A stretch of 64,000 nt of DNA from Mobula birostris (Eukaryota). A program made the position numbers and the translations under genes. The notes beneath the pieces were generated by a model, which was given only the letters and a program-made list of their open reading frames with translations, did no database searches and was not told where the DNA came from. This document shows, piece after piece, positions 3,634 to 29,878 of the stretch. Every line of letters starts with the position of its first letter. Positions within the stretch are counted from its first letter, which is position 1. The DNA lies in NCBI RefSeq assembly GCF_030028105.1, contig NC_092380.1:70615717-70679716 (forward strand), in the 5' to 3' direction.

Positions 3634-3653
3634 TTACTTGACTGATGAATCAC
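3634..3653 (-). CDS. Probable last coding exon of the B7-H6-like gene (G-DSSVK-stop)
   Basis: Strong acceptor TTTTCCTTTCTCTTCTATATCCTAG. Phase 1 matches the TM exon donor. TAA at 3636-3634 and a minus-strand AATAAA at 3357-3352. Too short to confirm by homology. Confidence 0.5.
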
Positions 3654-4689
3654 CTAGGATATAGAAGAGAAAGGAAAATTAAGATGCATTGTTAACCTGG
3701 TTTGCCTTCTCATGCAGTTTGCTTAGGAAATAATTCTACTTTACTGACAGACAATGTATTAGCCAAAAATGTTTGGCTTTCCACGTCATTACATGAAGTG
3801 ACTGTAAATGACAAAAATGAAATATTATATATTTTATAATGTAATGAATTATGTTTAATATATCTTACATAACCTATAGAAAATTAAACTTAGTATATCC
3901 TGTCATCACTCTATGCAAAATATTATTTGTATCGATAGTACCTAATAAGATGTCAGTGTTAACTATAACGCATTAATATTTTCAGAATACATTCCATTTA
4001 ACATGACAACCTGTAAAATTAAGAAACTAAGACATGTTTTCCACCTGTATGCAGGCAAGGTTTGTTTCTTTGTGCTGGGATTCACAAGAGGTAAACTGAG
4101 TGCAAATTGTTGCCAGTATTGAAGTCATTGGTGCTGACGGTAAAACTGGCTTTGTTTTAAAAGGGACCTGTTACAGGGAATCCTTGGTGCTCATTTCATA
4201 CGGATGAAAAACCCTTGGTAATTAGTTCAATAATACAAAACTGCAGTCTGGGATAATAGTAAATCATGTCCATGGAAGGTGGAAAAGCAAAAGCAAAAGC
4301 TGAAGGGAAATCTTAAGCTAATTCCGCAGACCCCTATGAATGAAGACTCCAGGGTGAGTTAATTTAACCTGATGCACTGCTGCACTGAGTAATGTCTCTG
4401 TGAAGCTGTGAGCCTTTCCTCTCACCACAACTACCATTACCTAACACTGTGTCATTGGGAAGCTTCATCAGGAGATCTGTTGGGAATCACAGAGCACTGC
4501 TGATGAAGTTAGCTGTGATCCACAAAATGATAGTTTATTTTCCTGTCAATTTGTAAACAAATGCATGAGGTGCATCCTTGGCTGTATTTTTGCCCTGCTT
4601 ACCTCTGGCTGCCCTTCTCTAATTGCTTCCTTTCTCTTGATATTTCATCATTTCTATCATTGCACTGACAATCAAAATGTGGCGCACCT

Positions 4690-5340
4690 CAAGATTGCGT
4701 GCTTAGCCCACTTCTCTACTCTCTCTGCACCCACGACTGTGGTCAGGCACAGCTCAAACACCATCTATAAATTTGCCAATGACAACTACTGTTGGCAGAA
4801 TCTCAGATGGTGATGAGGAGATGTACAAGAGTGAGGTAGATCAGCTGATTGAGGGGTGTCACAACAACAACCTTGCATTCAACGTCAGTAATTTGTGGAT
4901 ATATTTCATTAGGAGTTTGAGGAGATTTGCTATGTCACCAAAGACTAGCAATTTTCTAAGATATACTGTGGAGAGCATTCTAACAAATTATATCACCATC
5001 AGGTACGGACAAGCACCTGCAGAAAAAGCCACAGAAAATTGCAAACTCAGACACCTCCATCATGGGTACTAGCCTCTCCAGCATTGAGAACGTCTTCAAA
5101 AGGCGATGCCTCAAAATGCTACATCCATCATGAAGGACCTCCATCACCGAGCACATGCAAGTATTACTTGATCCTCATTGCTACTGTCAAGGCGGGGGGG
5201 GGGTGGGTACAGGAGCCTGAAGATGCAAACAGTGTTTTAGGAACAGCTTCTATCCTTTTGCCATCAGATTTCTGAATGAACAATGAACTCATTTATACTA
5301 CCTCACTATTTTTTTCACTCTTTTTTTTTACACTACTTAT
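4690..5340 (+). mobile_element. Degenerate Rex1/Babar-type LINE RT 3' fragment
   Basis: HSSNTIYKFAND..., EMYKSEVDQL..CHNNNLAFNVS and RYTVESILT motifs, with multiple frameshifts. Confidence 0.7.
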
Positions 5341-7215
5341 TTACAGTGCCTATAAAAAGTATTCACCAACCACCACCCCCCCGGAAGTTTTCATATTTAT
5401 TGTTTTACAACTTTGAATCACAGTGGACTTAATCTGGCTTTTCTGACACAGAAAAAGACCCTTTTGTGTCAAAGTGGATGTTTATGCATTCAATTATTTT
5501 GTGTTTTAGGTGAAAACAAAGTGATCTAAATTAATTATAAGTATAAAACACAAAATAATTGATTGCATAAATATTCACTCCATTTGATATGACACACGTA
5601 ATCATCACTGGTGCAGCCAATTTGTTTAAGAAGCCACATTATTAGTTAAATGGAGATTACCGTGTGTAGTCAAGGTGTTTCAATTGATTGTAGTAAAAAT
5701 ACACCAATATCTGGAAGGTCCAACTACTGGTGAGTTAGTATGCTGGCAAAAAAACGCCCCATGAAAACAAAAGAACATCTCAAGCAACACCATGGAAAGG
5801 TTATTGAAAAGCACAAGTCAGGAGATGGTTACAAGAAAATTTCTCATCAAGAAATGGTAAGAATTTGGCACAGCTATAAATCAGCCTAGAGCAGGCTGTC
5901 CTCAAAACTGAGTGACCATGCAAGAAGGGGTTGAGTGAGGAACGCCATCAAGAGACCTATGACAACTTTGAAGGAGTTACAAGCTTCAGTGGCTGAGATG
6001 GGAGAGACTGTGCATACAACAACTGTTGCCCGGATGCTTCACCAGTCGCAGCTTTATGGAAGAGAGCCAAAGAAAAAGCCACTGTTGAAAAAAACACATG
6101 AAATCTCAGCTAGACTTTGCCAGAAGGCACGTGGGAGACTCTGAAGTCAGCTGGAAGGAGGTTCTATGGTCTGATGAAAACAAAATTGAGCTTTCTGGCC
6201 ATTAGACTAAATGCTACATTTGGCATAAGCCAAACACTGCACTTCATTAATGTAGCCCCCCTGGCCACCCTCAGGGTCGCTCGGCTCGCTGTCGTCTAGG
6301 GAAACAGCCTCGGCCCCGCCAAACTGGGTAATTCGTTTGTGTGGATGCTGTGTGAGGTACCCCACCCCGCCCAAATAACAGACAATACACCAGATGCAAT
6401 TAAATGATTTACAGTTTATAGATATTACTGGAACTATGTAATTAAAAGAGAATAAAATATAAAAGGAAAATAAAAGGCGCCACACTTATCACAGTTCAAT
6501 CTCTTCGTGCACAAAAACCGTTGGAGCTCAAGGACCTTCTTCGTCACCCTGTGACCCCTCGGACCACCTCGACCAGCCGCCTGGGACCAACAACGGTGGT
6601 CGACCAGACGCTCCACACGAGTCCGTCTCCGTCTCCTCGCTGAACGTCCCGCTCGGGGTCTGACCCCGTTAGCGGACTCACAGCACCTGGTCCATCCTCT
6701 GTCTCGCTCTCCCGCCTTCTGCCCCCAAACCCCCTCGCATACAGTATCTTCAAATACACCAAAACCATAACAACTATCCCAATTGGTTAATAGCACCCTC
6801 TTATCACCCTCTAAACCACAATAAGCTGCTAGCGCAAACTTTCTCAGCGTTAAAGCACAACAAAGCCGCATTCCCCAGATTAACATAGCAAAAACGCCAT
6901 TTTAATTAGCCTCCGCAGTAACATAAAAATCGAAACCCCCTTACACTCTCCCCCCACCAAATAAAGTCATGTCCTCATGACTTCTAAATAACTCGCCACC
7001 CAGTCCTACAGACACACAACACACACATACACAGATACACACAGTGACAGTGCTCCCCAAACAGTGGACCTTACTCCCGTCCCACGGGCGCTAAATAGGC
7101 CAACCTATCTGGGAGCTTCTTAACCCTCTGAGACCTCTGTACCCCCTCACCTAAACCCACAAGGCTCAGACACTACTAGGGATACCTCGGGCCTGCTTGC
7201 CAACTCCTCTCTCAC

Positions 7216-8931
7216 TCAGGCCACCACTACAGCTCGGAGCCCCCTGTCCCGTGGCCGGGGCCCCGCCTCTCCTCCTTCCTGATCCTGCCGTAACTCAGAC
7301 TGCCCACAGCTAGCCCTCCCCACTACACCTGACTCAGTGGGAGAAGGGCCAAAGGTCTCTTCCTCAATCACGGGGAAATTAGCGAAAGGCAGCATGTACC
7401 ACATGTGCAGCACATCATCCTCCGAATCCGTATTCTTCCTCATTCCTTCGATCGGTAGCTGCTGTTTGAGTTTCTCCAAACTGAAACATTTAGCTGGGGC
7501 TACCCCTTCAGCCTCCTGCAGTCGAGACGTCAGCTTCTTCGGGGACTCCTTCAACTCTCGCCACAGCCTCAGCAGTTCTGACTCAGGGTTCCTGGCCATC
7601 TCAATCTGGGACGCAGTTACCCCACCAGCTTCTTCCACCCTGACTTGAAAAGCAGCAGTTAAAGAATGTTCAGCCTCCGGTTGTTTCTTCCTGAGGACGT
7701 CTTCCAGGTCAACTTTCAGTTTTTCCACTTCATTTAAACTCACGATTGTCACCTTCAGGTTCCTTTCAAGCGTCCGCCTCCCTTTTCCGAGATCGGTCCT
7801 CCATTTCTTTACCTCCTCGGGAGTGTAGTCAAACACCCCTCCCTGGGCTCTCGGTTTTCTGTTGACCTTAGTCAGAACACTTCCTCGATCTTCCCCAACT
7901 TGTAAATCTTCCAATCTGTTCTGAATGGACGTCTTGAGTTTCTGCTGATACCTTCGAAGGTGGGTCATTGTTTCTTCTCGCTGGATTAATTCGTCAGTAT
8001 ATGACCGCAGTGCGGTGCAAATCCCCTCTCTTCCCTGTGTCTCATTCAGATTGACGACCTGGGTTTCCATCCCCCGGTCCACCACTGTCTGTCCCAACAC
8101 CAGGAAGTTCAACTGGTATGTCGGGTCATTTTCCTCACATTTCACCAAACTCCTCCGGCCAAAAACTCCTCCACATTTGACACTTCGCTTCGGTCGCCCG
8201 GGCTCAGCCACTCGCCTCGCCTCATAGTCCCCCAAGGCGAATCCAAGCTCTAGGCGGTCATCCACATACGTCAAAACTCCACACACCTTCACTTCCCCCA
8301 CGGTTTTCCTCATGCCCCGCGGGAAGGATGCAGGGGCTCCGGATATGCCCTTGGGCATCTTTTCGGATCGGAAGAATCCTAGGGAACTAATAAAGGCCAT
8401 CTTCGGCTCAACAGCCGCACTCCTCAGGATCTGGCAACATCCACCCCTCAGATGCAGCACATTAAACCACGTCGCATCATCCACACACACGCTGTCTTCA
8501 TCTTCCACGCCGCCAGGGTCCAGTTGCCGCGACCTCTCTCTCACTGAGGTGTCTTCAGCGGTCAACTCCCCTCCCTCATGGTGGTTCGGAGCATCTACTA
8601 AGAGGGTCTCACCCTCAGCTACTTTCCCCAAGCCGTACCACCGCTGGGTCTCGTTTAAATTCGGTACCGGCTCAAGGCTGCTACACACGTCCTCAGAAGC
8701 AACTCGACACGCTGGGTGCCCAGACAATGCCCCCATGAACTCCAGGGTCATTAACCAATCATCGTCTTCTGGATAACTACTACCACTAGTACCCAAAGTC
8801 TCCGGTGCCCTTGCGGTTGTCAAGGGTAAATGCTTCAGACACTGGTTGTAAAACGAACTGTCCAACAACTTGATCTGTGCGCCGGGGTGGAGGATAGCAT
8901 TAGCATCGCTTCCCTCTATCCATAGCGACAC
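7216..8931 (-). CDS. 571-aa open Pol remnant: protease-like N-terminus fused in frame to an integrase C-terminal tail
   Basis: ANAILHPGAQIKLL resembles the AILDTGAQV protease site with the catalytic Asp lost. LQVGEDRGSVL...GRRTLERNLK resembles the Gypsy integrase tail. No YxDD RT context or DDE core recognisable. Confidence 0.6.
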   Translation of the reverse strand: MSLWIEGSDANAILHPGAQIKLLDSSFYNQCLKHLPLTTARAPETLGTSGSSYPEDDDWLMTLEFMGALSGHPACRVASEDVCSSLEPVPNLNETQRWYGLGKVAEGETLLVDAPNHHEGGELTAEDTSVRERSRQLDPGGVEDEDSVCVDDATWFNVLHLRGGCCQILRSAAVEPKMAFISSLGFFRSEKMPKGISGAPASFPRGMRKTVGEVKVCGVLTYVDDRLELGFALGDYEARRVAEPGRPKRSVKCGGVFGRRSLVKCEENDPTYQLNFLVLGQTVVDRGMETQVVNLNETQGREGICTALRSYTDELIQREETMTHLRRYQQKLKTSIQNRLEDLQVGEDRGSVLTKVNRKPRAQGGVFDYTPEEVKKWRTDLGKGRRTLERNLKVTIVSLNEVEKLKVDLEDVLRKKQPEAEHSLTAAFQVRVEEAGGVTASQIEMARNPESELLRLWRELKESPKKLTSRLQEAEGVAPAKCFSLEKLKQQLPIEGMRKNTDSEDDVLHMWYMLPFANFPVIEEETFGPSPTESGVVGRASCGQSELRQDQEGGEAGPRPRDRGLRAVVVA

Positions 8932-9116
8932 CCTGGGGCGTGGCCCCTCTAAGCCTTCAGGAATAGGGTCTTTTCCTTGCGGAAGTTCAGTGGTACATTG
9001 CTAGGAACGTGTTTCCCCAGAGACCGCAGGCCGTTCCCCCACTGGGCCTCCACTAAGTTTCCCGACACCTCTCTGATCAGCTGAACAACTGACCCCCTGA
9101 AATGATCTCCCTGGCA

Positions 9117-9628
9117 CTACAAGCAATTTAGCCGCCCTCCCCGCCAGAGAAGACACACTGAAAACGTTCCCCCCTCTTTCAAATAACTGACAGCTGTCAC
9201 TACGGTGTAAGTGAACCTGACAGCTCTAACACCGTCACCAGCCCGCCTACTCAAACTTTCAACCAATCCCTGTCGCTCTCCCTCAACCGAGCACTGCCAC
9301 TCATCTAACAACTGAGAGATCCGCTCCGCCCACGTCTCACACATCTCCGCCCCTCCTGGGGTGGACACTATCCCCAGTGCCAGGCGGAGCCTGCCAGAGC
9401 TAGAACATTTATTCGCAGACTCTACCTCCAAATCAGACCACTCTTTCCTCTCTCTCCCAACTGCATGGACAGCCCCGAGTGCCACCTCTAACTCGTCAAT
9501 GCTAGTCTGAACTCGAACGAAGACCGCACCCACAACGCATACAGCAATCAACAGCAAATAACCCACAGAGACACACATTACAGATTTAATCAGGGCACCA
9601 CACAGCATACCAACAGACTCAAGCATCC
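9117..9628 (-). CDS. Shortened PNMA-like Gag ORF
   Basis: [46 protein letters not shown] resembles the PNMA-type Gypsy Gag capsid segment (recognised from memory). The frame is open from the PBS region to 9117. Confidence 0.65.
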
Positions 9629-11785
9629 CGGACAAAGCCCCCACAATGTAGCCCCCCTGGCCACCCTCAGGGTCGCTCGGCTCGCTGTCGTCTAGGGAAA
9701 CAGCCTCGGCCCCGCCAAACTGGGTAATTCGTTTGTGTGGATGCTGTGTGAGGTACCCCACCCCGCCCAAATAACAGACAATACACCAGATACAATTAAA
9801 TGATTTACAGTGTATAGATATTACTGGAACTATATAATTAAAAGAGAATAAAATATGAAAGGAAAATAAAAGGCGCCACACTTATCAAAGTTCAATCTCT
9901 TCGTGCACAAAAACCGTTGGAGCTCAAGGACCTTCTTCTTCACCCTGTGACCCCTCGGACCACCTCGACCGGCCGCCTGGGACCAACAACGGTGGTCGAC
10001 CAGACGCTCCACACGAGTCCGTCTCCGTCTCCTCGCTGAACGTCCCGCTCGGGGTCCGACCCCGTTAGCGGACTCACAGCACCTGGTCCATCCTCTGTCT
10101 CGCTCTCCCGCCTTCTGCCCCAAAACCCCGCGCATACAGTATCTTCAAATACACCAAAACCATAACAACTATCCCAATTGGTTAATAGCACCCTCTTATC
10201 ACCCTCTAAACCACAATAAGCTGCTAGCGCAAACTTTCTCAGCGTTAAAGCACAACAAAGCCGCATTCCCCAGATTAACATAGCAAAAACGCCATTTTAA
10301 TTAGCCTCCGCAGTAATATAAAAATCGAAACCCCCTTACATTAAAAACACACCATCCCTACCACGAAGCATGGTGGTGGCTGCATCATGCTGTGGGGATG
10401 CTTCACAACTGGAAGGCTTGTGAAGGTAGAGGGTAAAATGAACGCAACAAAATACAGGGAAATCCTGGAGGAAAACCAGATGAGGTCTGGAAGAATTTGG
10501 GAGAAGATTTGTTTCCAGCAAGACAACAGTCCCAAGCATAAAGCCAAAGCTACATAGGAATTGCTTAAAAACAACAAAGTTAATGTCCTGGAGTGGCAAG
10601 TCAGAGTCCAGACCTCAATCCAATTGAGAATTTGTGTCTAGACTTGAAAAGGGCTGTTCACTCACGATCCCCATGCAATCTGACAGAGCTTGAGCAGTTT
10701 TGTAAAGAAGAATGGGGAAAATTGCAGTGTCCAGATGTGCAAATCTGATAGAGACCTATCCACACAGACTCAAGGCTGCAATTGCTGCCAAAGGTGCATG
10801 TACTAAATACTGACTTGAAGGGGCTGAATACTTATACAATCAATTATTTTATGTTTTATATTTGTAATTAATTTAGATCACATTGTAGAGATCTTTTTCA
10901 TACAGTATTGACAAGTAAGAGTGCTTTTCTGTTGATCAGTGTCAAAAAAAGCCGAACTAAATCCACTATGATTCAATGTTGTAAAACAATAAAGCATGAA
11001 AATTTCCAGGGTGGGGGTGAATACTTCTTATAGGCACTGTAATTTAATTTTTATATCTATTTTCCTATTGCAATTTATAGTTTTTTTAAAATTATGTGTT
11101 GCAATGTACTGCTGCTGGAAAACAACAGATTTCATGACATATGCCAGTGATATTAAACCTGATTCTGACAATTGTCTACTCCACTACACCCTTACCCATC
11201 AACATCCAAGGATCCTGAACCATCCATTCACTCTCTGTGCCACAGGTACTCATGTTCTTCTTGTCTGTCTCACTCACTATTCTAACTTATCTGCTTGGAA
11301 TTGCCAGGATATTAGCCAATTTATGGAGAGATCAGAGACTCAGTATTCTTCTGCAAGTAGCTTATTCCTATTGCCAGAATCTTCTCCATCACTTAAAAGA
11401 CTGAGTTAAGACTGTTGTGAATAACAACACTCAACAAATTAAACACAATCTTAATACAAACCAGGCTACTGTAATTACAGTAAGTGTTATCAAAAATTGT
11501 ATTGGTACTTGCTATTTCAATGCCACCTTGTAATCACACAAACTCTAACTCGGCTCCACTCTGCTCAACTGTCCCACATTTAAAATAGCTCTTCCATCAT
11601 CATTGGGTAAAAGTCCTAAAGCACCTTATCAATAGCATTGTCATCATCACAAGAAAAGTGGCCTCTCAGAGACACAGAGTGATGGACAATGTACGTTTGA
11701 CTTCATGCCAATACCCACATTCCTAGAAGGAATAAAGAAGATAGTAGCAGATATGCTCATGTACTGTGAGAAAAAAAGACCTTAC

Positions 11786-11878
11786 CTCTTAATTTAACTA
11801 CGTATCTTATAAATGATGCCGATACTACTGCCAAAATACAAATAATACTTGCAACAATAACGTAATGATTCCTGGGTT
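11786..11878 (-). CDS. NCR3LG1: B7-H6-like gene, transmembrane exon (EPRNHYVIVASIICILAVVSASFIRYVVKLR)
   Basis: Acceptor TTAATATTTACAG, donor AG|GTAAGG, 93 bp, phase 1-1. A roughly 20-aa hydrophobic helix is followed by basic residues. Confidence 0.85.
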
Positions 11879-12706
11879 CTGTAAATATTAAGAATAAAAT
11901 AAGCATCAACTAATATTTGATCATTTGAAGCAATGCATTGGCTTAACTTGTCAGGATGATCCTTTGTATTTAACACAGTACTTATACAGATTTGATGCTA
12001 TTAAGAACAATGGAGCAACCATGAAATCTGGAGAAGAAACAAAGAGATTCAAAGCTAAAAATGAGCATGAAATATAAACAGATAAAATATTACTTCAGAC
12101 TTTAACATTGAAAGAACTGAGTGTGGTGTCTTTCCTAAACAAAGATTTTTAAATTCTATAGGTATAGATGGGATGGAATTCTTAGAAATGAAAAAGCAAT
12201 GATGTCTCACCATCAGCCAAGAGCTGAAAATAACATAACGTGAAGAAAATAATTAATGTGTTGATCATCTCCTTTCACACACACATAATTCACCCACAGA
12301 ATGGAAGGCAAGAGCAAGCCTCTATGAATAAATGGAAAGCAATGGTCACCAAGATTAATCTTAATCCAGTTATGACAACGAAGGAGACATCTTATCTCAC
12401 TTCACCAAGCAAGAAGTGGGGACAAATGTAAAATCCTCACCAGGCCTAAAAAAAATACTAAGAAAAGAAAAGGTTATCCTTATTCCCAGTCCCAGCTGTG
12501 AGAGTATTCACTGCCATACTTCTTCAGCCCACCTGATTTCTCTCTCAGTTCTCCATCTTATCCATTTGTTTTTCCATCCTTGATTTCCCTTTGATAGACC
12601 TGCAGATGGTATTTTTTTTTAATGGAGTAGAATGGAATATAGTAAATCTGGTCCACAAAAAAGAAGTCAAATGTGGCTTGTTGATTGTGGTAAAGCTGGG
12701 GTTACA

Positions 12707-15700
12707 TAGAAACATAGAAACATAGAAAATAGGTGCAGGAGTAGGCCATTCGGCCCTTCGAGCCTGCACCGCCATTTATTATGATCATGGCTGATCATCC
12801 AACTCAGAACCCTGCACCAGCCTTCCCTCCATACCCCCTGATCCCCATAGCCAAAAGGGCCATATCTAACTCCCTCTTAAATATAGCCAATGAACTGGCC
12901 TCAACTGTTTCCTGTGGCAGAGAATTCCACAGATTCACCACTCTCTGTGTGAAGGAGTTTTTCCTAATCTCGGTCCTAAAAGGCTTCCCCTTTATCCTCA
13001 AACTGTGACCCCTCGTTCTGGACTTCCCCAACATCGGGAACAATCTTCCTGCATCTAGCCTGTCCAATCCCTTTAGGATTTTATACGTTTCAATCAGATC
13101 CCCCCTAAATCTTCTAAATTCCAACGAGTACAAGCCCAGTTCATCCAGTCTTTCTTCATATCAAAGTCCTGCCATCCCAGGAATCAATCTGGTGAACCTT
13201 CTTTGTACTCCCTCTATGGCACGGTTGTCTTTCCTCAGATTAGGGGACCAGAACTGCACACAATACTCCAGGTGTGATCTCATCAAGGCCTTGTACAACT
13301 GCAGTAGTACCTCCCTGCTCCTGTACTCGAATCCTCTCGCTATAAATGCCAGCATACCATTTGCCTTTTTCACCGCCTGCTGTACCTGCATGCCCACTTT
13401 CAATGACTGGTGTATAATGACACCCAGGTCTCGTTGCACCTCCCCTTTTCCTAATCGGCCACCATTCAGATAATAATCCATTTTCCTATTTTTGCCACCA
13501 AAGTGGATAACTTCACATTTATCCACGTTAAATTGCATCTACCATGAATTTGCCCACTCACCCAACCTATCCAAGTCACCCTGCATCCTCTTAGCATCCT
13601 CCTCACAGCTAACACTGCCACCCAGCTTCGTGTCATCCGCAAACTTGGAGATGCTGCATTTAATTCCCTCATCCAAGTCATCAATATATATTGTAAACAA
13701 CTGGGGTCCCAGCACTGAGCCTTGCGGTACCCCACTAGTCACTGCCTGCCATTCTGAAAAGGTCCCGTTTATTCCCACTCGTTGCTTTCTGTCTGCTAAC
13801 CAATTCTCTTACCCCCAATACCGTGTGCTTTAAGTTTGCACACTAATCTCCTGTGTGAGACCTTGTCAAAAGCCTTTTGAAAATCCAAATATACCACATC
13901 CACTGGTTCTCCCCTATCCACTCTACTAGTTACATCCTCAAAAAATTCTATGAGATTCGTCAGACATGATTTTCCTTTCACAAATCCATGCTGACTTTGT
14001 CCGATGATTTCACCGCTTTCCAAATGTGCTGTTATCACATCTTTGATAACTGACTCCAGCAGTTTCCCCACCACCGACGTTAGGCTAACTGGTCTATAAT
14101 TCCCCAGTTTCTCTCTCCCTCCTTTTTTAAAAAGTGGGGTTACATTAGCCACCCTCCAATCCTTAGGAACTAGTCCAGAATCTAATGAGTTTTGAAAAAT
14201 TATCACTAACACATCCATTATTTCTTGGGCTACTTCCTTAAGCACTCTGGGATGCAGACCGTCTGGCCCTGGGGATTTATCTGCCTTTAATCCCTTAAAT
14301 TTACCCAACACCACTTCCCTACTAACATGTATTTCGCTCAGTTCCTCCATCTCACTGGACCCTCTGTCCCCTACTATTTCTGGAAGATTATTTATGTCCT
14401 CCTTAGTGAAGACAGAACCAAAGTAATTATTCAATTGGTCTGCCATGTCCTTGCTCCCCATAATCAATTCACCTGTTTCTGTCTGTAGGGGACCTACATT
14501 TGTCTTTACCAGTCTTTTCCTTTTTACATATCTATAAAAGCTTTTACAGTCAGTTTTTATGTTCCCTGCCAGTTTTCTCTCATAATCTTTTTTCCCCTTC
14601 CTAATTAAGCCCTTTGCCCTCCTCTGCTGAACTCTGAATTTCTCCCAGTCCTCAGGTGAGCCACTTTCTCTGGCTAATTTGTATGCTTCTTCTTTGGAAT
14701 TGATACTATCCCTAATTTCTCTTGTCAGCCACGGGTGCACTACCTTCCTTGATTTATTCTTTTGCCAAACTGGGATGAACAATTGTTGTAGTTCATCCAT
14801 GCAATCCTTAAATGCTTGCCATTGCATATCCACTGTCAATCCTTTAAGTGTCATTTGCCAGTCTATCTTAGCTAATTCACGTCTCATACCTTCAAAGTTA
14901 CCCTTCTTTAAGTTCAGAACCTTTGTTTCTGAATTAACTATGTCACTCTCCATCTTAATGAAGAAATCCACCATATTATGGTCACTCTTACCCAAGGGGC
15001 CTCTCACAACAAGATTGCTAATTAACCCTTCCTCATTGCTCAAAACCCAGTCTAGAATAGCCTGCTCTCTAGTTGGTTCCTCGACATGTTGGTTCAAAAA
15101 ACCATCCCGCATACATTCCAAGAAATCCTCTTCCTCAGCACCTTTACCAATTTGGTTCACCCAACCTACATGTAGATTGAAGTCACCCATTATAACTGCT
15201 GTTCCTTTATTGCACACATTTCTAATTTCCTGTTTAATACCATGTCCGACCTCACTACTACTGTTAGGTGGCCCGTACACAACTCCCACCAGTGTTTTCT
15301 GCCCCTTAGTGTTACGCAGCTCTACCCATATCGATTCCACATCTTCTCGGCTTATGTCCTTCCTTTCTATTGCGTTAATCTCATCTTTAACCAGCAACGC
15401 CACCCCACCTCCTTTTCTTTCATGTCTATCCCTCCTGAATATTGAATATCCCTGAACATTGAGCTCCCATCCTTGGTCACCCTGGAGCCATGTCTCTGTG
15501 ATCCCAACTATATCATAATCATTAATAACAATCTGCACTTTCAATTCATCCACCTTGTTACAAATGCTCCTTGCATTGACACACAAAGCCTTCAGGCGCT
15601 CTTTTACAACTCTCTCAGCCCTTATACAATTACGTTGAAAAGTGGCCCTTTTTGATGCTTGCCCTGGATTTGTCGGCCTGCCACTTTTACTTTTCTCCTT

Positions 15701-15960
15701 ACTACTTTTTGCTTCTACCCTCACTTTACACCCCTCTGTCTCTCTGCACTGGTTCCCATCCCCCTGTTGTGAACTAACCTCCTCTCGCCTAGCCTCTTTA
15801 ATTTGATTCCCCCCCACAACCATTCTAGTTTAAAGTCACCTCAGTAGCCCTCGCTAATCTCCCTGCCAGGATATTGGTCCCCCTAGGATTCAAGTGTAAC
15901 CCGTCCTTTTTGTACAGGTCACGCCTGCGCCAAAAGAGGTCCCAATGATCCAAAAACTTG
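12707..15960 (-). mobile_element. CR1 LINE, near-complete ORF2 (APE endonuclease + RT), frameshifted
   Basis: 675-aa ORF 13796..15823 (GITETW, GDFN, YLDFQKAFD). PQGSVLGP and FADD are in the next frame. (ACATAGAA)n tail at 12707-12729. Confidence 0.95.
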
Positions 15961-16965
15961 AAAAGGTTCCAAGCCTTTTTTATGCCATGGATCCCTACCA
16001 TTAACCAAGGGGTCTGTGGACCCCAGGTTGGAAACTCCTGTGTTAAAGGATCATCTGATTTTTATCCTTGCTCACAATCTCAGCAAAAATGCATGAAACA
16101 AAAGCTACTGAGATAACAGTAACAAGAAAAGAGAAGATATGATTGTAAGTTTGGCTGTCTGTAAGATTTATAAACAGCCTAGGTTAAACACAGGAGAAAA
16201 TTGACATAGCTTACCACATAATTTACAGAGGGACAAAAGTCCTTAATCAAACTTGGAATTCTCGCATTGGACTGAGCATTGAGTCCATCAGTGGAACACA
16301 TATTTCCTAAGCTGAGGGTTCTATTGCACATCAGATCTAACCCCTCAGCTTTCGTCATGTCTGCTGGTTGCACGCATTTGAAAGAGCTGACAGTTTTGGT
16401 TATTTTTTACATGTTTAATATTTAACTCTATTTAATGATATTCTTTACTTCGTTAGTTTTTATTTTGATGCAATAAATAAATGAAGCAATTATTTAGCCC
16501 CAGTTTAGAGGAGCACTTTACAGCCAGGGAATGAAGCAATGTAGACTGTGTGCAAGCAGATGGGATCAAATTAAATTGACATCTCGGGGCACAGGGCCTG
16601 TTCCTGTGTTGTACTGTCTCTGTTCAGTATTCTATATCTAAGTTTACTAAAGGTTAAAAGGCTCTTAGGACAATTCAGGACACTCTGATTGACCTCCTGA
16701 TGGCTTGCAGCCAATGGCAGGGCTGCAGAAGGGAACTGCGACTCTGCTGAAAGGAACAGAAAGAGGGGCTTAGCGTGGCTGTTGGACTGGATCAGTGTCT
16801 AGCTTTTCCAAGCAACTTTTAAAAGAACAAAGTAAATGGATATATCATATATCTATAAACTTGTCCTGCCCACTCACCCCCATATTTCACTTTTCAGATG
16901 CCCTTCCTTCTCTGCTCCCTTCTAACTCCTTTTCTCATTTACGTTCTTCTATCGATCGAACTCAC

Positions 16966-17286
16966 CTGGCACAGTGAGAGTTGATTCTATTGTAAAATAA
17001 TCCGGAAATGTTAGATGTCTCACTACACATCTGTACTTGTCACCATTATTGTTGAATGTTGGTTGAATCTTCAGTTGACTGTGAACATTAAAAGTGTTAT
17101 CACTATTAGCGACAACCTGATTTGTATAACAGTCCGATGAAACAACTTCACTTCCCAGTTTTGTCATTTTCACCCAGCTGATTTCCAGCTGCTGAGGGTA
17201 AAATCCATTAACGTTGCATGTCAGAGAGCCTTCCGAACCATTCAGAATTGTTATTGAGTGTGAAGATATGCTAATGTTTGGTCGAG
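16966..17286 (-). CDS. NCR3LG1: B7-H6-like gene, IgC1 exon
   Basis: ARPNISISSHSITILNGSEGSLTCNVNGFYPQQLEISW...NSDNTFNVHSQLKIQPTFNNNGDKYRCVVRHLTFPDYFTIESTLTVP carries the C1-set CxVxGFYP, W and YxCxVxH motifs. Acceptor TTTTTTTTTACACAG, donor CAG|GTGAG, 321 bp, phase 1-1. Confidence 0.93.
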
Positions 17287-17479
17287 CTGTGTAAAAAAAA
17301 ACAAAATTACAGTTAAATAACTGCAGGTGTTGGAAGAGGAAAACAGAGATAGACTATAGCAGAAACACTAAGGAAATCAAAAAGCATCTGCAGGGTCATT
17401 TTTTCAGGTGAAGAACTCTCCATCAGAACTGGAAAAGTTAGAATCACATGTGTCTCAAGTTCTAGAAAGAGGAGAAAGG

Positions 17480-20400
17480 AATTCAACAGAGGGAAAATCA
17501 GCAACAGGGTGTTACAATAGTTATGGGAGATTTCAGTATGCAAGTAGATTGGAAGCATCTAGTTGGTGTTGGATCCCAGGAGAAGGACTTTGTAGAGTGC
17601 CTATATGTTCCTTTTAGAGCATCCCGTGCCGAACCCAGCCAGAGAAAAAGTAGTTCTGGATTTGGTGTTGTGTTATGAACCAGATTTGATTAGGGAGGCT
17701 TAAAGTAAAGGAGCACTTAGGAGGCAGTGATAATAGTATGATAGAATTCACCATGCAGTTTGAGAGGGAGTCAATAAAATCAGATGCATCGACATCACAG
17801 TCGAGTGGAAGTAACTGCAGAGGTATGAGAGAGGAGCTGGCCAAAGTTGATTGGAAGGGGAAAGTAAGTCAGGATGTTAATAGAGCAGCCATGGTAGGAG
17901 TTTCTGAGAGTAATTTAGAAGATGCAGGATCAGTTCATCCCAAAGGGAAGATCAGGCAACCATGACTGACAAGGGAAGTCAAGGACCACACAGAAGCAGA
18001 AGAGAGGGCATATAATATAGCAGAAAATGAGTGGGAAGCTCGAGCATATGGAAGCTTTTCAAAAACAACAGAAGGTAACTGAAAAAGGAAGACGAAGAAA
18101 TTGGTTGTTGACTTCAGAAGGAGCAGCGGACCGCACGATCCAATTTACATCGGTGGTGCACAAGTAGAACAGGTCAAAAGCTTTAAGTTCCTTGGGGTCA
18201 GTATCACAAATGACCTGACTTGGTCCAACCAAGCAGAGTCCACTGCCAAGAAGGCCCACCAGCACCTTCACTTCCTGAGAAAGCTAAAGAAATTTGGCCT
18301 GTGCCCTAAAACCTTCACTAATTTTTATAGATGCACCGTAAAAAGCATTCTTCTAGGGTGCATCACAACGTGTTATGGAAGTTGTCCTGTCCAAGACCGG
18401 AAGAAGCTGCAGAAGATTGTGAACACAGTCCAGCACATCACACAGACCAATCTTCCGTTCTCGGACTCACTTTACACCGCATGCTGTCGGAGCAATGCTG
18501 CCAGGATAATCAAGGACACAACCCACCCAGCCAACACACTTTTTGTCCCTCTTCCCTTGGGGAGAAGGCTCAGGAGCTTGAAGACTCCTACGGCCAGATT
18601 TGGGAACAGCTTCTTTCCAACTGTGATAAGACTGCTGAACGGATCCTGACCCGGATCTGGACCGTACCCTCCAAATATCCGGACCTGCCTCTCGTTTTTT
18701 TTGCACTACCTTACTTTCCCTTTTCTATTTTCTATTTATGACTGACAATTTAAATTTTTAATATTTACTATTGATTTCTAATCCAGGGAGCGCGAAGCAC
18801 AGAATCAAATATTGCTGCGGTGATTGTACACTCTAGTATCAATTGTTTGGCGACAATAAAGTAAAGTAAAGTAAAAGCAAGGAGAAAAGGAAAGATGAAA
18901 TATGAAGGTAAGCTTGCCAATAATATAAAAGAGGATACCAAAAGTTTTTCAGATATATAAAGAGTAAAAGAAAGGCAAGAGTGGAAATTGGACCATGGGA
19001 AAATGATGCTGAAGAGATAGTAAGAGGAAAAACTGAAAATGTGGTGAACCTAATCAGTATTTTACATCAGGCTTCACTGTGGAAGACACCATCAATATGG
19101 CACAAATTCAAGAGTGTCAGGGGGCAGAAGTAACTGTAATTACTATTACTAACAAGAATTTGCTTGGGAAGCTGAAAGGTCTGAAGGCAGAGAAGTCAAC
19201 TGGACCGGATGATGTACACCTCAAGGTTCTGAAAGAAGTGGCTGAAAAGATTGTGGAGGCATTCATAATGATCTTTCAAGAATCACTAGATTCTGGAATG
19301 GTTCCAGAAGAATGGAAAGTTACAAATGTCACTCTACCCTTCAAGAAGGGAAGGAGGCAGAAGAAAGGAATCTATAGGCCATTTAGTCTGACCTTAATGA
19401 TTGGGAAGATATTGGAGTCGATTATCAAGGATGAGATCTCAGGGTACTTGGAGGCACATGATTAAATATGTCATAGTCAGTATGGATTCCTCAAGGGAAA
19501 ATCTTGCCAGAGAAATCTGTTGGAATTCTTTGCAGAAATAACAAGCAGGCTAGACGAAGTGTACTTGGATTTTCTGAAGGTCTTTGACAAGGTACCACAC
19601 ATGAAGCTGCTTTACGAGCTACGAGTCCATGATATTACAGGAAAGATTCTAGCATGGATAAAGCAATGTTTGGTTGGCAGGAGTCAATAAAGGGAGCCTT
19701 TTCTGACTGGCTGCCAGTGACTAGTGGTGTTTCACAGGGGTCTGTGTTGGGACCAATTCTTTTTACATCATATGTCAATGATTTGGATGATGGAATTGAT
19801 GGCTTTGTTGCAAAGTTTGCAGCCAATATGAAGATAGGTGGAGGGGCAGGTAGTTTGCGGAAGTAGAGAGGCTACAGAAGGACTTAGACAGATTTGGAGA
19901 ATGGGCAATAAATGGCAGATGAAATACAGCATCAAGAAGTGCATGGACATGCACTTTGGTAGAAGAAATGAAAGGGTTAAGTATTCTCTAAAAGGAGAGA
20001 AAATACAAAAAAACTGAGGTGCAAAGGTACTTAAGAGTCCTTGTGCAGGGTTCCCTAAAGGTTAATTTGCAGGTTAAATCTATGGCAAGGAAGGCAAATG
20101 CATCAGTAGTGATCTTTCAAGAATCGCTAGATTCTGAAATGGTTCAGGATGACTGGAGAATTGCAATGTTACTCCATTCTTTAACAAGGGAGAGGAAAAA
20201 ACAGGAATTTATAGGCCAACTAGCCGGACTTCAGTGAATGGGAAGTTGTTAGAGTTTATAATTGTGAAGTTTTAGAGTACTTGGAAGCACATGATAAAAA
20301 AGACCAAAGTCAGCATGGTTTACTTAAGGAAAACTCTTGCCTGACAAATCTGTTGGAATACCTTGAAAAAGTTACAGGCACGATAAACTAAGGAGAATGG

Positions 20401-20580: not shown

Positions 20581-20584
20581 CTAG

Positions 20585-21889: not shown

Positions 21890-22530
21890 CCCCGTTCTCC
21901 TGACTTCTGCCCATAACCTTTGACACACTTACCGTACTAATCAAAAACCTATCAACATGCTTTGGCCTCCATTGGCATCTGTGGCAATGGATTCCACAGA
22001 TTCACAAACCTATGGCTAAAGAAAATTCTCTCCATCTCTATTCTAAACAGATATCCATTGATTCTGAGGCTGTGCCCTCTGGTCTAAGACTCTCACTTTT
22101 CAAAACATCTCCTTCATATCCCCTCTCTCCAGGTTTTTCAATATTCAGTAGATTTCAATAGATCCTCTCTCATTCTCTTAAACTCCAGTGAGTACAGTTC
22201 TAGAGCCATCATACGCTCCTCATACATAAATCCTTTCATTCCCAAGATCATTGACGTAAATCTCCTCTGAACCCGCTCCAATGTCAGCATATCTTTGCTT
22301 AAATAAGAGGCCTAAAACTACTCACAATACTCCAAATGTTATCTGACCAATGCATTGTAAATTCTAGTCCTCTTGAAATGAATGCTAACATTGCATTTGC
22401 TTTCCTTACTACCAACTCAACATGCAAGTTAACCTTTAGGGAACCATGCGCTAGGTCTCCCAAGTCCCCTTTCCCCTCTGATTTCTAAATTTGCTCCCAG
22501 TTTTCAAAATTGGCTATACCTTTATTGCAA
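21890..22530 (-). mobile_element. Degenerate CR1 3' fragment
   Basis: Similar to the 3' ends of other CR1 copies in the window. Confidence 0.7.
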
Positions 22531-22559
22531 AGTCTATGTACTTCCCTGTTGTCTATTCC

Positions 22560-25500
22560 ATTTAAACTAGATTTGCAGGGGGAGGGGAACCAGAGTGTTA
22601 GAGCAGATAGTGAGGTGGAGGAGGATAAAGGTCATGCGAGAACTGCAAGTATAGTGCATGGAGTAAAGCCAGATCTGACATATAAAGAGGCTTTGAGGAA
22701 AGGGAAACAGAATAAAGGGTGTAAAGGTAGTAAGGTAGAAGGGCTAAAGTGTGTGTACTTCAATGCAAGAAGCATCAGGAACAAGGGTGATGAACTGAGA
22801 GCTTGGATACATACGTGGAATTATAATATAGTGGCCATTACAGAGACTTGGCTGGCACCAGGACAGGAATGGATTCTCAATATTCCTGGATTTCAGTGCT
22901 TTAAAAGGGATAGAGAGGGTGGAAAAAGGGGAGGAGGGGTGGCATTACTGGTCAGGGATACTATTACAGCTACAGAAAGGGTGGGTCATGTAGCAGGATC
23001 CTCTTTTGAGTCAGTATGGGTGGAAGTCAGGAACAGGAAGGGAGCAGTTACTCTATTGGGGGTATTCTATCCCCTGGTAGCAGCAGAGATACAGAGGACC
23101 AGATTGGGAGGCAGATTTTGGAAAGGTGCAAAAATAACAGGGTTGTTGTCATGGGTGACTTTAACTTCCCTAATATTAGTTCCACCTGATTAGTTCCAAG
23201 GGTTTAGATGGGGCGGAGTTTGTTAAGTGTGTCCAGGACGGATTCCTGTCACAGTATGTGGACAGGCCGACTAGAGGGAATGCCATACTAGATCTAGTAC
23301 AAGGTAATGAACCGGGTCAGGTCACAGATTTCTCAGTGGGTGAGCATCTGGGGGACAGTGACCACTGCTCCCTGGCCTTTAGCATTATCATGGAAAAGGA
23401 TAGAATCAGAAAGGACAGGAAAATCTTTAATTGGGGAAGGGCAAATTATGAGGCTATAAGGCTAGAACTTGCGGGTGTGAATTGGGATGATGTTTTTGCA
23501 GGGAAATGTACTATGGACATGTGGTCGATATTTAGAGATCTCTTGCAGGATGTTAGGGATAAATTTGTCCCGGTGAGGAAGATAAAGAATGGTAGGGTGA
23601 AGGAACCATGGGTGACAAGTGAGGTGGAGAATCTAGTCAGGTGGAAGAAGGCAGCAGACATGAGGTTTAGGAAGCAAGGATCAGATGGGTCTATTGAGGA
23701 ATATAAAGAAGCAAGAAAGGAGCTTAAGAAGGGGCTGAGAAGAGCAAGAAGGGGGCATGAGAAGGCCTTGGCAAGTAGGGTAAAGGAAAACCCCAAGGCA
23801 TTCTTCAATTATGTGAAGAAAAAAAGGATGACAGGAGTGAAGGTAGGACCCATTAGAGATAAAGGTGGGAAGATGTGCCTGGAGGCTGTGGAAGTGAGCG
23901 AGGTCCTCAATGAATACTTCTCTTCGGTATTTACCAATGACAGGGAACTTGCTGATGGTGAGGACAATATGAGTGAGGTTGATGTTCTGGAGCATGTTGA
24001 TATTAAGGGAGAGGAGGTGTTGGAGTTGTTAAAATACATTAGGACGGATAAGTCCCCGGGGCCTGACGGAATATTCCCCAGGCTGCTCCACGAGGCGAGA
24101 AAAGAGATTGCTGAGCCTCTGGCTAGAATCTTTCTGTCCTCGTTGTCCACGGGAATGGTACCGGAGGATTGGAGGGAGGCGAATGTTGTCCCCTTGTTCA
24201 AAAAAGGTAGTAGGGATAGTCCGGGTAATTATAGACCAGTGAGCCTTACGTCTCTGGCGGGAAAGCTGTTGGAAAAGATTCTTAGAGATAGGATCTCTGG
24301 GCATTTAGAGAATCATGGTCTGATCAGGGACAGTCAGCATGGCTTTGTGAAGGGCAGATCATGTCTAACAAGCCTGATAGAGTTCTTTGAGGAGGTGACC
24401 AGGCATATAGATGAGGGTAGTGCAGTGGATGTGATCTACATGGATTTTAGTAAGGCATTTGACAAGGTTCCACATGGTAGGCTTGTTCAGAAAGTCAGAA
24501 GGCATGGGATCCAGGGAAGTTTAGCCAGGTGGGTTCAGAATTGGCTTGCCTGCAGAAGGCAGAGGGTCGTGGTGGAGGGAGTACATTCAGATTGGAGGAT
24601 TGTGACTAGTGGTGTCCCACAAGGATCTGTTCTGGGACCTCTACTTTTTGTGATTTTTATTAACGACCTGGATGTGGGGGTAGAAGGGTGGGTTGGCAAG
24701 TTTGCAGACGACACAAAGGTTGGTGGTGGTGTAGATAGTGTAGAGGATTGTCAAAGATTGCAGAGAGACATTGATAGGATGCAGAAGTGGGCTGAGAAGT
24801 GGCAGATGGAGTTCAAACCGGAGAAGTGTGAGGTGGTACACTTTGGAAGGACAAACTCCAAGGCAGAATACAAAGTAAATGGCAGGATACTTGGTAGTGT
24901 GGAGGAGCAGAGGGATCTGGGGGTATGTGTCCACAGATCCCTGAAATTTGCCTCACAGGTAGATAGGGTAGTTAAGAAAGCTTATGGGGTGTTAGCTTTC
25001 ATAAGTCAAGGGATAGAGTTTAAGAGTCGCGATGTAATGATGGCGCTCTATAAAACTCTGGTTAGGCCACACTTGGAGTACTGTGTCCAGTTCTGGGTCG
25101 CCTCACTATGGGAAGGATGTGGAAGCATTGGAAAGGGTACAGAGGAGATTTACCAGGATGCTGCCTGGTTGAAAGAGTATGCATTATGATCAGAGATTAA
25201 GGGAGCTAGGGCTTTACTCTTTGGAGAGGAGGAGGATGAGAGGAGACATGATAGAGGTATACAAGATAATAAGAGGAATAGATAGAGTGGATAGCCAGCA
25301 CCTCTTCCCCAGGGCACCACTGTTCAATACAAGAGGACATGGCTTTAAGGTAAGGGGTGGGAAGTTCAAGGGGGATATTAGAGGAAGGTTTTTTTACTCA
25401 GAGAGTGGTTGGTGTGTGGAATGCACTGCCTGAGTCAGTGGTGGAGGCAGATACACTAGTGAAGTTTAAGAGACTACTAGACAGGTATATGGAGGAATTT

Positions 25501-25597
25501 AAGGTGGGGGCTTATATGGAAGGCAGGGTTTGAGGGTCGGCACAACATTGTGGGCCAAAGGGCCTGTACTGTGCTGTACTATTCTATGTTCTATGTT
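22560..25597 (+). mobile_element. CR1 LINE, near-complete ORF2 with few lesions
   Basis: ORFs 22510..23193 (APE) and 23258..25189 (RT: [21 protein letters not shown]). (TTCTATG)n tail. Confidence 0.95.
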
Positions 25598-26275: not shown

Positions 26276-26614
26276 CCAACACTTTCATGATTGAAGCCTG
26301 TTCTGCACTTTCAGGAACGATGAACACAGTGCAAGTGTAGCTTCCTTCATCAGCAATCTGTACTTTTGGAAGATGAAGTGAAGCATTTCCCCTCTTTAAA
26401 TCGGGCTCAGAAATGTACGCACCAGGTCGATTTTGAACTTGATTTCCTGTCTCGTAAGAAAATACAGCTGTTTCTTTGTTACGAGTCCATTTGACTCCTA
26501 GCTTGTCTAAGTCAATCTCTGCACCTGCAAAGTCAGTAACTTTGCATTTCAGACTAACATCTTCATTTACAAATACTGTCAGTGGGCTTGGAAATATCTC
26601 CAGATTAAAAGCAC
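26276..26614 (-). CDS. NCR3LG1: B7-H6-like gene, IgV exon
   Basis: GAFNLEIFPSPLTVFVNEDVSLKCKV...LGVKW...NRPGAYISEPDLKRGNASLHLPKVQIADEGSYTCTVFIVPESAEQASIMKVL has the V-set C, W and DxGxYxC motifs plus the RPGA...GxASLxLP pattern recalled for human B7-H6. Acceptor CTTTTATAG, donor TGG|GTAAG, 339 bp, phase 1-1. Confidence 0.92.
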
Positions 26615-26965
26615 CTATAAAAGAAGCATAAACATTGCGAAGTTATAAGATAACATAAAAGTTATAAAATCCCATTTAGATGTAACACTGCTGCAACATT
26701 GCAAGATTGTCAGTTCAAAGCATATCTACAGTTTCAAAACAATACCTGCACAAATTCTGTTAGCGCATCCTATCTTTGTATGACCTCTAGAAGCACTTGC
26801 TGCCAGGATGGGCCTACCTGGAAGCTCAGTGAAGATGTTTTCAGGTCTGGCCATGATGTCAGCTATCAGTGTACGTTTTCATGGCATTATTTTTCACTCA
26901 TCGATCTGAACACATTGTCCTAATATTTATTACAGATCAATTTGTGATTTTTATGTGCATTAATG

Positions 26966-27117
26966 AGTATTTCAATGACAATATGCAAGTGGATAATGAG
27001 TGAACAGAAAGACTGGACAATTAAAATGTGTAAGTTTCTTTGTGAGGAAGTACACGTATTAATTGTCAAGCCTTTCCATTCATTATTTATCCACTTGCAT
27101 ATTGTCATTGAAATACT
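26966..27117. repeat. 152-bp hairpin with a 31-bp perfect outer stem
   Basis: 26966-26996 is the exact reverse complement of 27087-27117, and the inner arms pair imperfectly. Confidence 0.85.
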
Positions 27118-27229
27118 TACTACTACACAGAGAACTGTTCAACCCACTGAGTCAATGCCAACCCCAGGCAAAGGAATTCTATCAATTATCTTCCTTCCCT
27201 TACTTTCCCTGCAATCTATTCACCCTCAC

Positions 27230-29390
27230 ATGTAGGTATCGGACTACTGGAAAATGATGGTAGAGAGGTAGTAATGGGGAACAAGGAAATGGTAGACAAA
27301 CTGAATAGGTATTTTGCATCAGTCTTCACTGTGGAAGACACTAACAGTATGCTGGAAATTCAAGCGTGTCAGGGGGCAGAAATGTGTGAAGCTGTTAGTC
27401 TAGGGATCTGTAGTGGGTCCAATGTTGTTTGTAATATATATTCATGATCTAGATGATGGGGTGGTAAATTGGATTAGTAAGTGTGCAGATGATACTAAGA
27501 TAGGTGGTGTTGTGGATGATGAGGTAGGTTTTCAAAACTTGCAGAGAGATTTAGGACAGTTAGAAGAGTGGGCTGAAAGATGGCAGATGGAGTTTAATGC
27601 TGAAAAATGTGAGGTGCTACATTTTGGTAGAACTAATCAAAATAGGACATACATGGTAAATGGTAGGGCATTGAAGAATGCTGTAGAACAGAGGAATCTA
27701 GGAATAATGGTGTATAGTTCCCTGAGGATGGAATCTCATGTGGATAGGGTGGTGAAGAAAGCTTTTGGTTTGCTGGCCTTTATTAATCAGAGCATTGAGT
27801 ATAGGAGTTGGGATGTAATGTTGAATTTGTATAAGGCATTGGTAAGGCCAAATCTGGAGTATTGTGCACAGTTCTCATCACTGAATTATAGGAAGGATGT
27901 CAATAAAATTGAGAGAGTACAGAGGAGGTTTACTAAAATGTTGCCTGGGTTTCATCTCCTAAGTTACAGAGAAAGGTTGAACAAGTTAGGTCTTTATTCT
28001 TTGGAGCGTAGAAGGTTAAGGGGAGACTTGATAGAGATGTTTAAAATTATGAGGGGGATTGATAGAGTTGACGTGGTTAGACTTTTTCCATTGAGAGTGG
28101 GGAAGATTCAAAGAAGAGGGCATGGTTTGAGAATTAGAGGACAAAAGTTTAGGGATAACATGAGGGGGAACTTCTTTACTCAGAGAGTGGTGGCTGTGTG
28201 GAATGAGTTTCCAGCAGAAGTGGTTGAGGCAGCTTGTCGTTGAGGTTGTCGTTTAAAGTTAAATTGGATAGATATATGGACAGGAAAGGAATGGAGGGTT
28301 ATGGGCTGAGTGGAGGTCGGTGGGAATAGGATAGGGTAAGGGTTCGGCATGGACTAGAAGGGCCGAGATGGCCTGTTTCCGTGCTGTAATTGTTATATGG
28401 TTACATGGTTATATAGGGAGAAGGTTCCTGGGAAACTGAAAGGTCTGAAGGTAGATGAGTCTCCTGGACCAGATGGTGTACACCCCAAGGTTCTGAAAGA
28501 GGTAGATGAAGAGAATATGGAGGCATTGGTAATGACCTTTCAAGAATCAATTTATTCTGGCATAGTTCCGGAGGAATAGAAAATTGGAAATATCATGCCA
28601 CTCTTGAAGAAGGAAGAGAGGCAGAAGGAAAGATAGGCCAGTTTTGGCCTGAAACGTTGACTGTACTTTTTTCCATAGATGCTTTCTGGCCTGCTGAGTT
28701 CCTCCAGCATTTTGTATGTTGCAGTCCTTGTACAGGATTCCCTAAAGGTTAATGTGTAGGTTGAGTCAATGGTGAGGAAGGCAAATGCGATGTTAGCATT
28801 CATTTCAAGAATTACTAGAACAGAAAAACAAGGATGTAATGTTGAGGCTTTAAAAGCACTGGTGAGGCCTCACTTGGAGCATTGTGAGCAGTTTTGAGCC
28901 CTTATCTAAGAAAGGATGTGCTGACATTGGAGAGGGTTCAAAGGAAGTTCACGAAAATGATTCTGGGATTGAAAAGCTTGTCATATAAGAACATTTGATG
29001 TCTCAGGCCTGTACTCACTGGAATTCAGAAGAATGAGGGGTGACCTCATTGAAACCTATCGAATGTTGGAAGGCCTCAATAGAGTGAATGCGGAGAGGAT
29101 GTTCCCTATGGTGGGGGAGTCTAAGACCAGAGGACACAGCCTCAGAATAGAGGGGTGTCCTTTTAGAATGGAGATGAGGTGGAATTTCTTTAGCCAGAGA
29201 GTGGTGAATCTGTAGAGCCCTAGTCATTTGGTATACTTAAGGCAGAGGTTGATAGGTTTGTGATTAGTCTGGGCATAAAGGGATGCAGGGAGAAGGCAGG
29301 AGATTGGGACTGAGAGGGAAAATGGATCAGCCCTGAAGAAATAGCCGAACAGACTCTATGAGCCAAATGGCCTAATTCTGCCCCTGTATT
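27230..29390 (+). mobile_element. Several degenerate CR1 fragments
   Basis: ORF 27413..28243 (CADD, YCAQF, RGHGLRI) plus further RT and 3' fragments. Confidence 0.85.
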
Positions 29391-29763
29391 TTATGTCCAC
29401 CAACTCCCTCCCAATTCTCTTGCCACCAGCCAACACTGCAAGGTAATTTTCAGTTGACAATGAGCCCACCCACACGGTCACAAAGAGAACAAATTCGTCA
29501 CAGACAGCACTTGAAGTCAGGATCAAATCTAGGATCTCTGGTGCAGCACTGATGCAGTCCTTAACTGAACATACTGTACCCAGAACATAAAACATGGAAA
29601 AATACAACACAACAGGCCCATTGGCCTTTGATGTCTGTGCTGCCTGTGAGGTAAATTTAAGTTTCATATCTGCCCGCACAAGGACTATATCCCTCCATTC
29701 CCTGTATGTTCATGCATCTGTCTAAATGCGTCTTAAAAGTAAACCTAGATCGTAATACTTTAC

Positions 29764-29812
29764 CTGATGCTGAAATAAGTGAGACAATACCACAAAGGGT
29801 CAGAATTTTCAT
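29764..29812 (-). CDS. NCR3LG1: B7-H6-like gene, signal-peptide exon (MKILTLCGIVSLISAS-G)
   Basis: ATG with an in-frame upstream TGA, a hydrophobic leader, and donor CAG|GTAAAG in phase 1 that joins the V exon in frame. Confidence 0.8.
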
Positions 29813-29878
29813 CCTTGCATCAACCTTTCAAAGCATTTTCTGCCGACTATATCCATGAGTAGTTTAGTTAAAGTAGAA

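Follow-up and report, generated by a model that had tools for sequence, protein, structure and literature searches.

Does a minus-strand gene that is dispersed through 26 kb of transposon sequence in a ray genome encode an intact immune ligand, and to which family does that ligand belong? We addressed this question for a stretch of 64,000 nucleotides (nt) from the giant manta ray, Mobula birostris (contig NC_092380.1, positions 70,615,717 to 70,679,716 of the forward strand), hereafter called the window; all positions below are those of the window. A first-pass annotation, made from the letters alone, had described between 29812 and 3634 an intact, functional-looking gene resembling B7-H6 (NCR3LG1), the product of which would contain a V domain, a C1 domain, and a transmembrane (TM) segment. 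Sequence, predicted fold, phylogeny, and spliced transcripts bear out this description. The gene is very probably the annotated NCR3LG1-like gene of the giant manta ray and belongs to the B7-H6 branch of the B7 family, with a putative role as a ligand of NKp30-family receptors.

Gene structure and transcripts

The gene comprises five exons and four introns, arranged as follows.

29812-29764, minus strand: exon 1, coding part; ATG at 29812, 16-residue leader, and first base of the Gly17 codon
29763-26615, minus strand: intron 1; 3,149 nt, GT..AG
26614-26276, minus strand: exon 2, immunoglobulin V-type (IgV) domain; 339 nt, phase 1/1, motifs RPGA and GNASLHLP
26275-17287, minus strand: intron 2; 8,989 nt, with a long interspersed nuclear element (LINE) and other repeat fragments inside
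17286-16966, minus strand: exon 3, immunoglobulin C1-type (IgC1) domain; 321 nt, phase 1/1, motif YRCVVRH
16965-11879, minus strand: intron 3; 5,087 nt, GT..AG
11878-11786, minus strand: exon 4, connecting peptide, TM helix, and start of the tail, from a hydropathy scan and the sequence; 93 nt, phase 1/1
11785-3654, minus strand: intron 4; 8,132 nt, with a Gypsy-like element inside
3653-3340, minus strand: exon 5; last five codons and TAA at 3653-3634, the rest 3' untranslated region (UTR)

When the sequence was re-read and re-spliced, the five minus-strand exons of the first-pass annotation, with their GT-AG sites and with all four junctions in phase 1, proved exact to the base. All acceptors consist of a polypyrimidine tract and AG, and all donors read GTAAG or GTGAG. 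Joining the exons by hand and by script gave a coding sequence of 822 nt that specifies 273 amino acids and a stop in an uninterrupted frame, as had been claimed for a protein composed of a leader, IgV, IgC1, TM segment, and short tail. It was equally correct that the mechanical list of open reading frames (ORFs) catches only part of the IgC1 exon (16949-17173). Exons make up only 3% of the 26-kb span, and the remainder is dominated by repeats. The 5' UTR of exon 1 extends upstream past 29900, and an upstream ATG at 29820 reaches a stop after three codons. Within the 3' UTR of exon 5, an AATAAA was read in the sequence at 3357-3352.

RNA-type runs X1-X5 all hold the IgV exon, and their contigs trace most of the splicing pattern. 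A 563-nt contig of X3 (depth 237) covers 29900-29762 and is joined to 26612 across a gap of 3,149 nt that is bounded, on the gene strand, by GT..AG. The exon 2 contigs of X1-X4 all stop exactly at 26276, and the adjacent intron is without depth. The junction between exons 2 and 3 is shown by a 622-nt contig of X1 that bridges the two exons with zero differences from the genome, letters 1-301 lying on 26576-26276 and letters 301-622 on 17287-16966. Exon 3 (16966-17287) is covered by RNA contigs of X1, X2, X3, and X5, and a joint of 16966 to 11878 that skips 5,087 nt, again with GT..AG, appears in both X1 and X3. The donor of exon 4 is also used in RNA. A 151-nt contig of X1 that is joined to exon 3 lies on 11878-11784 and departs from the genome two letters beyond the end of exon 4; because exon 5 begins with GT, the same letters that start intron 4, a departure at 11784 fits use of this donor. 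As for exon 5, its sequence (3340-3653) occurs in RNA runs that also contain the IgV exon, and in a similar order (X1 1.00, X5 0.76, X2 0.59, X3 0.59). The X3 contigs carry S108R, H97R, and N196S, replacements that distinguish the protein of Mobula hypostoma. The junctions between exons 1 and 2, 2 and 3, and 3 and 4 are therefore seen in RNA contigs from two Mobula species.

X3 additionally contains contigs of low depth in the introns on both sides of exons 3 and 4, at 11700-11813, 11852-12601, 16011-16995, and 17258-17400 (depth 4-30, versus 186-254 for the exons). Read-through of the exon 4 donor in this run, which would end the protein a few codons further on, has a depth of 30 versus 186 for the spliced form. 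These intron-containing contigs are probably pre-mRNA.

The encoded protein and its place among B7-like families

The first-pass annotation considered the gene hidden and possibly unannotated, which turned out to be wrong. With the IgV exon as query, HMMER retrieved 723 matches from 1.84 billion representatives. One of them, a 273-residue NCR3LG1-like protein of Cetorhinus (P0006), led to relatives that include a 90% cluster with three members: XP_062918030.1 of Mobula hypostoma and two entries of Mobula birostris, XP_072128571.1 (natural cytotoxicity triggering receptor 3 ligand 1-like isoform X1) and XP_072128572.1 (isoform X2). The spliced product and XP_072128571.1 are the same gene product, identical at 273 of 273 residues. 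In GCA_030028105.1 the gene is publicly called with a span of 26,179 nt, exactly that of 3634-29812, and the public record has no other gene within 10 kb of either end. RefSeq thus already lists this NCR3LG1-like gene, and our finding is a confirmation rather than a discovery. RefSeq isoform X2 (242 amino acids) is our model with the 31 codons of exon 4, the TM exon, removed, and would be a secreted form.

The protein has the type I layout, with a signal peptide of 16-17 residues, one IgV domain, one IgC1 domain, and a single uncharged TM helix, followed by a cytoplasmic tail of 13 residues. Pfam identifies a V-set domain in exon 2 (E=2.4e-12) and a C1-set domain in exon 3 (E=4.5e-16), the latter scoring 59 bits versus 19 bits for a CD80-like C2-set. 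Both domains contain the cysteine pairs of canonical disulfides (Cys40-Cys111 in IgV and Cys153-Cys216 in IgC1), and three N-glycosylation sequons are present at N93, N133, and N145. Across the family, residues R79, G81, G92, and L96 show little or no variation, and the manta protein retains every invariant residue. An AlphaFold2 model built from a 64-sequence alignment (predicted local distance difference test, 91.5; predicted template-modelling score, 0.78) shows a pair of beta-sandwich domains, with a helix at residues 241-267.

Orthologues have been annotated in other elasmobranchs: the Mobula hypostoma protein shows 4 differences, those of Hemitrygon akajei and Cetorhinus reach 91% and 55%, and a further one comes from Scyliorhinus. 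The two Mobula species and a stingray have kept the same structure and length, and the RefSeq proteins of both Mobula species share the same C-terminal end. The coding differences seen between the two Mobula species amount to 4 amino-acid replacements and 3 synonymous changes; positive selection was considered and set aside, as these counts are not suggestive and are too few for a test.

Among solved proteins of the immunoglobulin superfamily, B7-H6 is the nearest to the manta protein in both sequence and fold. Scored per V-C unit against PDB, human B7-H6 matches with about 103 bits, followed by the second and first units of 4Ig B7-H3 (56.8 and 50.4 bits), mouse 2Ig B7-H3 (55 bits), TAPBPR (55 bits), SIRP-alpha (49 bits), and PD-L1 (40 bits). 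The total of 108.7 bits for 4Ig B7-H3 is the sum of its two V-C units. Human B7-H6 is also the best PDB match for each domain taken singly (V, 42.8 bits; C1, about 52 bits). A Foldseek search of PDB gave the same result: human B7-H6 accounts for each of the seven best structures (E 7e-22 to 4e-19; target-normalised template-modelling scores 0.80-0.87), after which come B7-H3, PD-L1, butyrophilins, and tapasin. The first-pass annotation had singled out RPGA..GxASLxLP as a pattern typical of B7-H6. Indeed, RPGA and G[DN]ASL.LP both align with the V domain of human B7-H6; however, CD276 likewise has G[DN]ASL, which leaves the RPGA half of the pattern as the only discriminating one.

We placed the protein in a maximum-likelihood tree of V-C units (50 rows, IQ-TREE, LG+C20). 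Outgroups were CD276, one long-branched TAPBPL-like row, and four unnamed immunoglobulin proteins (among them a gar and a bichir entry) that came from the weak tail of the IgV search; a profile search for named outgroups gave NCR3LG1-named proteins only. This careful tree omits five unnamed rows with long branches, and a quick tree that includes them agrees with it. The manta protein groups with its Mobula and Hemitrygon orthologues (100/100), and a six-row orthologue group adds Cetorhinus, Scyliorhinus, and Chiloscyllium (100/99). This group falls within an elasmobranch clade (94/91), to which the amniote NCR3LG1 of marsupials, kiwi, and tortoise is the sister group (87/95). CD276, the TAPBPL-like row, and the four unnamed immunoglobulin proteins all fall outside the complete B7-H6-like clade (72/90), of which the frog expansions also form part. 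In the trees run, with their limited outgroup sampling, the protein thus groups with tetrapod NCR3LG1 and apart from CD276 and the TAPBPL-like row. An approximately unbiased (AU) test rejected a clade of ray proteins and CD276 (p=0.0002).

Several observations weigh against assignment of the gene to the B7-H6 branch as an NKp30-type ligand. Identity to human B7-H6 is just 28-29%, and the 13-residue tail of the manta protein differs from the long cytoplasmic tail of the human one. The B7-H6-like clade as a whole is moderately supported, its outgroups are few, and the names within it stem largely from automatic annotation, those of the frog proteins being inconsistent. The AU test retained a grouping of the rays with the single, very long TAPBPL-like row (cost, 11.7 log-likelihood units; p=0.066), a branch that can attach almost anywhere. 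We discounted this p value as a sign of tapasin kinship, since one very long branch makes a weak test. At the level of the transcript, the junction between exons 4 and 5 lacks a direct RNA view, and at the level of function an NKp30-type receptor for any elasmobranch member is suggested by homology.

Of the alternatives, the one that survives best proposes that these proteins constitute an elasmobranch V-C1 lineage of B7-H6 ancestry that engages another receptor and serves in co-inhibition or adhesion, more in the manner of B7-H3, in which case a role as a natural killer (NK) cell ligand would be wrong. The position of B7-H3 as second-best PDB match, the GNASL.L motif in its V domain, and the 72/90 support of the B7-H6-like clade are compatible with this proposal, and the many shark paralogues with very different tails suggest functional divergence. 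Nevertheless, we consider it improbable: B7-H6 scores about twice as many bits per V-C unit as B7-H3, the C domain fits a C1-set far better than a CD80-like C2-set (59 versus 19 bits), and the AU test rejects union of the rays with CD276.

It is highly improbable, and already close to refuted, that the locus is a non-functional relic that is still transcribed, or an artefact of assembly or annotation in which chance exons were picked from among transposons. Such a view could draw on the small exonic share of a repeat-dominated span and on a last coding exon of only 20 nt, the junction of which is the one without a direct RNA view. It is opposed by the open frame and canonical splice sites, by spliced contigs that reach a depth of 237 in one run, and by structure and length that are kept in two Mobula species and a stingray, with 4 replacements and 3 synonymous changes between the former. 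Moreover, all invariant family residues are kept and the predicted fold is confident. Finally, kinship with tapasin (a TAPBPL-like protein) or SIRP instead of B7 ligands is extremely improbable: although tapasin, TAPBPR, and SIRP also combine V and C1 domains and are found among the PDB matches, and although the outgroup nearest to the clade is TAPBPL-like (four rows in the quick tree, one in the careful tree) and attachment of its single long row to the rays passed the AU test at p=0.066, the leader exon joins the IgV exon directly with no large N-terminal tapasin domain, a single C1 exon is present rather than the two C1 domains of SIRP, TAPBPR and SIRP-alpha reach 55 and 49 bits compared with 103 for B7-H6, and the top seven Foldseek structures are all B7-H6.

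Repeats and other features of the window

The first-pass annotation also stated that the gene is spread over 26 kb of transposons, and LINE and Gypsy-like sequences were indeed found in the introns. The gene spans 26 kb because its introns are filled with LINE endonuclease and reverse-transcriptase sequences and with Gypsy-type elements. Such repeat-filled introns are normal for the manta genome. The main elements are the following.

27413-28243, plus strand: LINE reverse-transcriptase fragment in intron 1 (RVT_1 match)
about 22510-25433, plus strand: LINE with endonuclease and reverse-transcriptase ORFs in intron 2 (Exo_endo_phos and RVT_1 matches)
13796-15823, minus strand: LINE ORF of 675 amino acids in intron 3, endonuclease and reverse transcriptase (Pfam)
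about 6251-10340: Gypsy-like element in intron 4

Over the LINE of intron 3 (12655-16092, minus strand), word depths of RNA contigs reach 10^4-10^5, which indicates that its repeat family is very abundant and probably active. The Gypsy-like element of intron 4 carries two near-identical sets of ORFs at its ends (6207-6886 and 9117-10281, minus strand), and one ORF, at 9117-9881, weakly matches a PNMA/gag-like sequence. In intron 2, an ORF at 18101-18649 (plus strand) that lies among reverse-transcriptase-like fragments matches Pfam ALKBH8_N (E=4e-11); rather than a host gene, it probably represents the C-terminal portion of a LINE ORF2. Runs of N at 40316-40483 and 40583-40886 (masked or gaps) occur within a stretch rich in simple repeats. 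Rfam and tRNA scans of the 64-kb window found nothing.

When the two immunoglobulin exons and about 200 relatives were compared with the 64-kb window by tblastn, no further exons of the family and no tandem cluster were found, and the same search gave no remnants of the long-tail exons of shark paralogues in the window.

Comparison with known B7 ligands

The gene encodes a type I membrane glycoprotein made of a signal peptide, IgV and IgC1 domains, a TM helix, and a 13-residue tail. It may be displayed on the cell surface as a passive ligand, a role proposed because the tail is too short to signal. The V domain would be engaged by NKp30 (NCR3)-family receptors on cytotoxic lymphocytes, in the way that NKp30 engages human B7-H6, and skipping of the TM exon, as in the RefSeq isoform, would give rise to a secreted form. 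One may go further and speculate that the short-tailed orthologue, found from basking shark to manta, and the isoform lacking the TM helix act as membrane ligand and secreted decoy for one NKp30-like receptor. We regard this extension as doubtful; if true, it would yield a receptor-ligand pair of the oldest jawed vertebrates that is open to experiment.

The pairing of B7-H6 with NKp30 is among the few NK receptor-ligand pairs thought to be as old as the first jawed vertebrates. B7-H6 is reportedly present in cartilaginous fish, in numbers that co-vary with NKp30. A cleanly defined and expressed orthologue from a ray is useful material for tests of co-evolution between the two partners. The locus has a second value as a positive control: reading of the raw sequence by eye recovered a five-exon gene exactly across 26 kb of repeats.

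Elasmobranch relatives differ most in the region that follows the TM helix. The architecture of the manta protein is common to elasmobranch NCR3LG1-like proteins, and their leader is nearly identical. The protein of the basking shark, Cetorhinus maximus, likewise has 273 amino acids and a short tail. In contrast, Scyliorhinus torazame and Chiloscyllium members of the same orthologue group have long repetitive tails and total lengths of 645-706 amino acids. Many B7-H6-like models from sharks (P0005, P0010, P0012, P0017, P0030, P0048) run 400-1,300 residues past the TM helix. Heptranchias P0012 has four additional C1-set domains after the TM helix, and in the Heterodontus and Scyliorhinus models repeated units without a Pfam match fill most of the long post-TM part. 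These long models represent either fused gene models or an unusual architecture.

B7-H3 (CD276) is likewise a V-C ligand of the B7 family and shares the GNASL.L motif with the manta protein, but it matches with only 50-57 bits compared with 103 for B7-H6 and forms a separate clade in the tree. Human B7-H6 is bound by NKp30 and possesses a long cytoplasmic tail with signalling-type motifs. The manta protein has no tail of this type; since tail length varies widely among elasmobranch members, the short tail is not disqualifying, and a long signalling-type tail is probably not a defining feature of the family. What human B7-H6/NCR3LG1 (PDB 3PV6, 3PV7, 4ZSO, 6YJP) and the manta protein have in common is the layout of leader, IgV, IgC1, and TM helix, together with the V motifs RPGA and G[DN]ASL.LP and the C1 motif Y.C.V.H.

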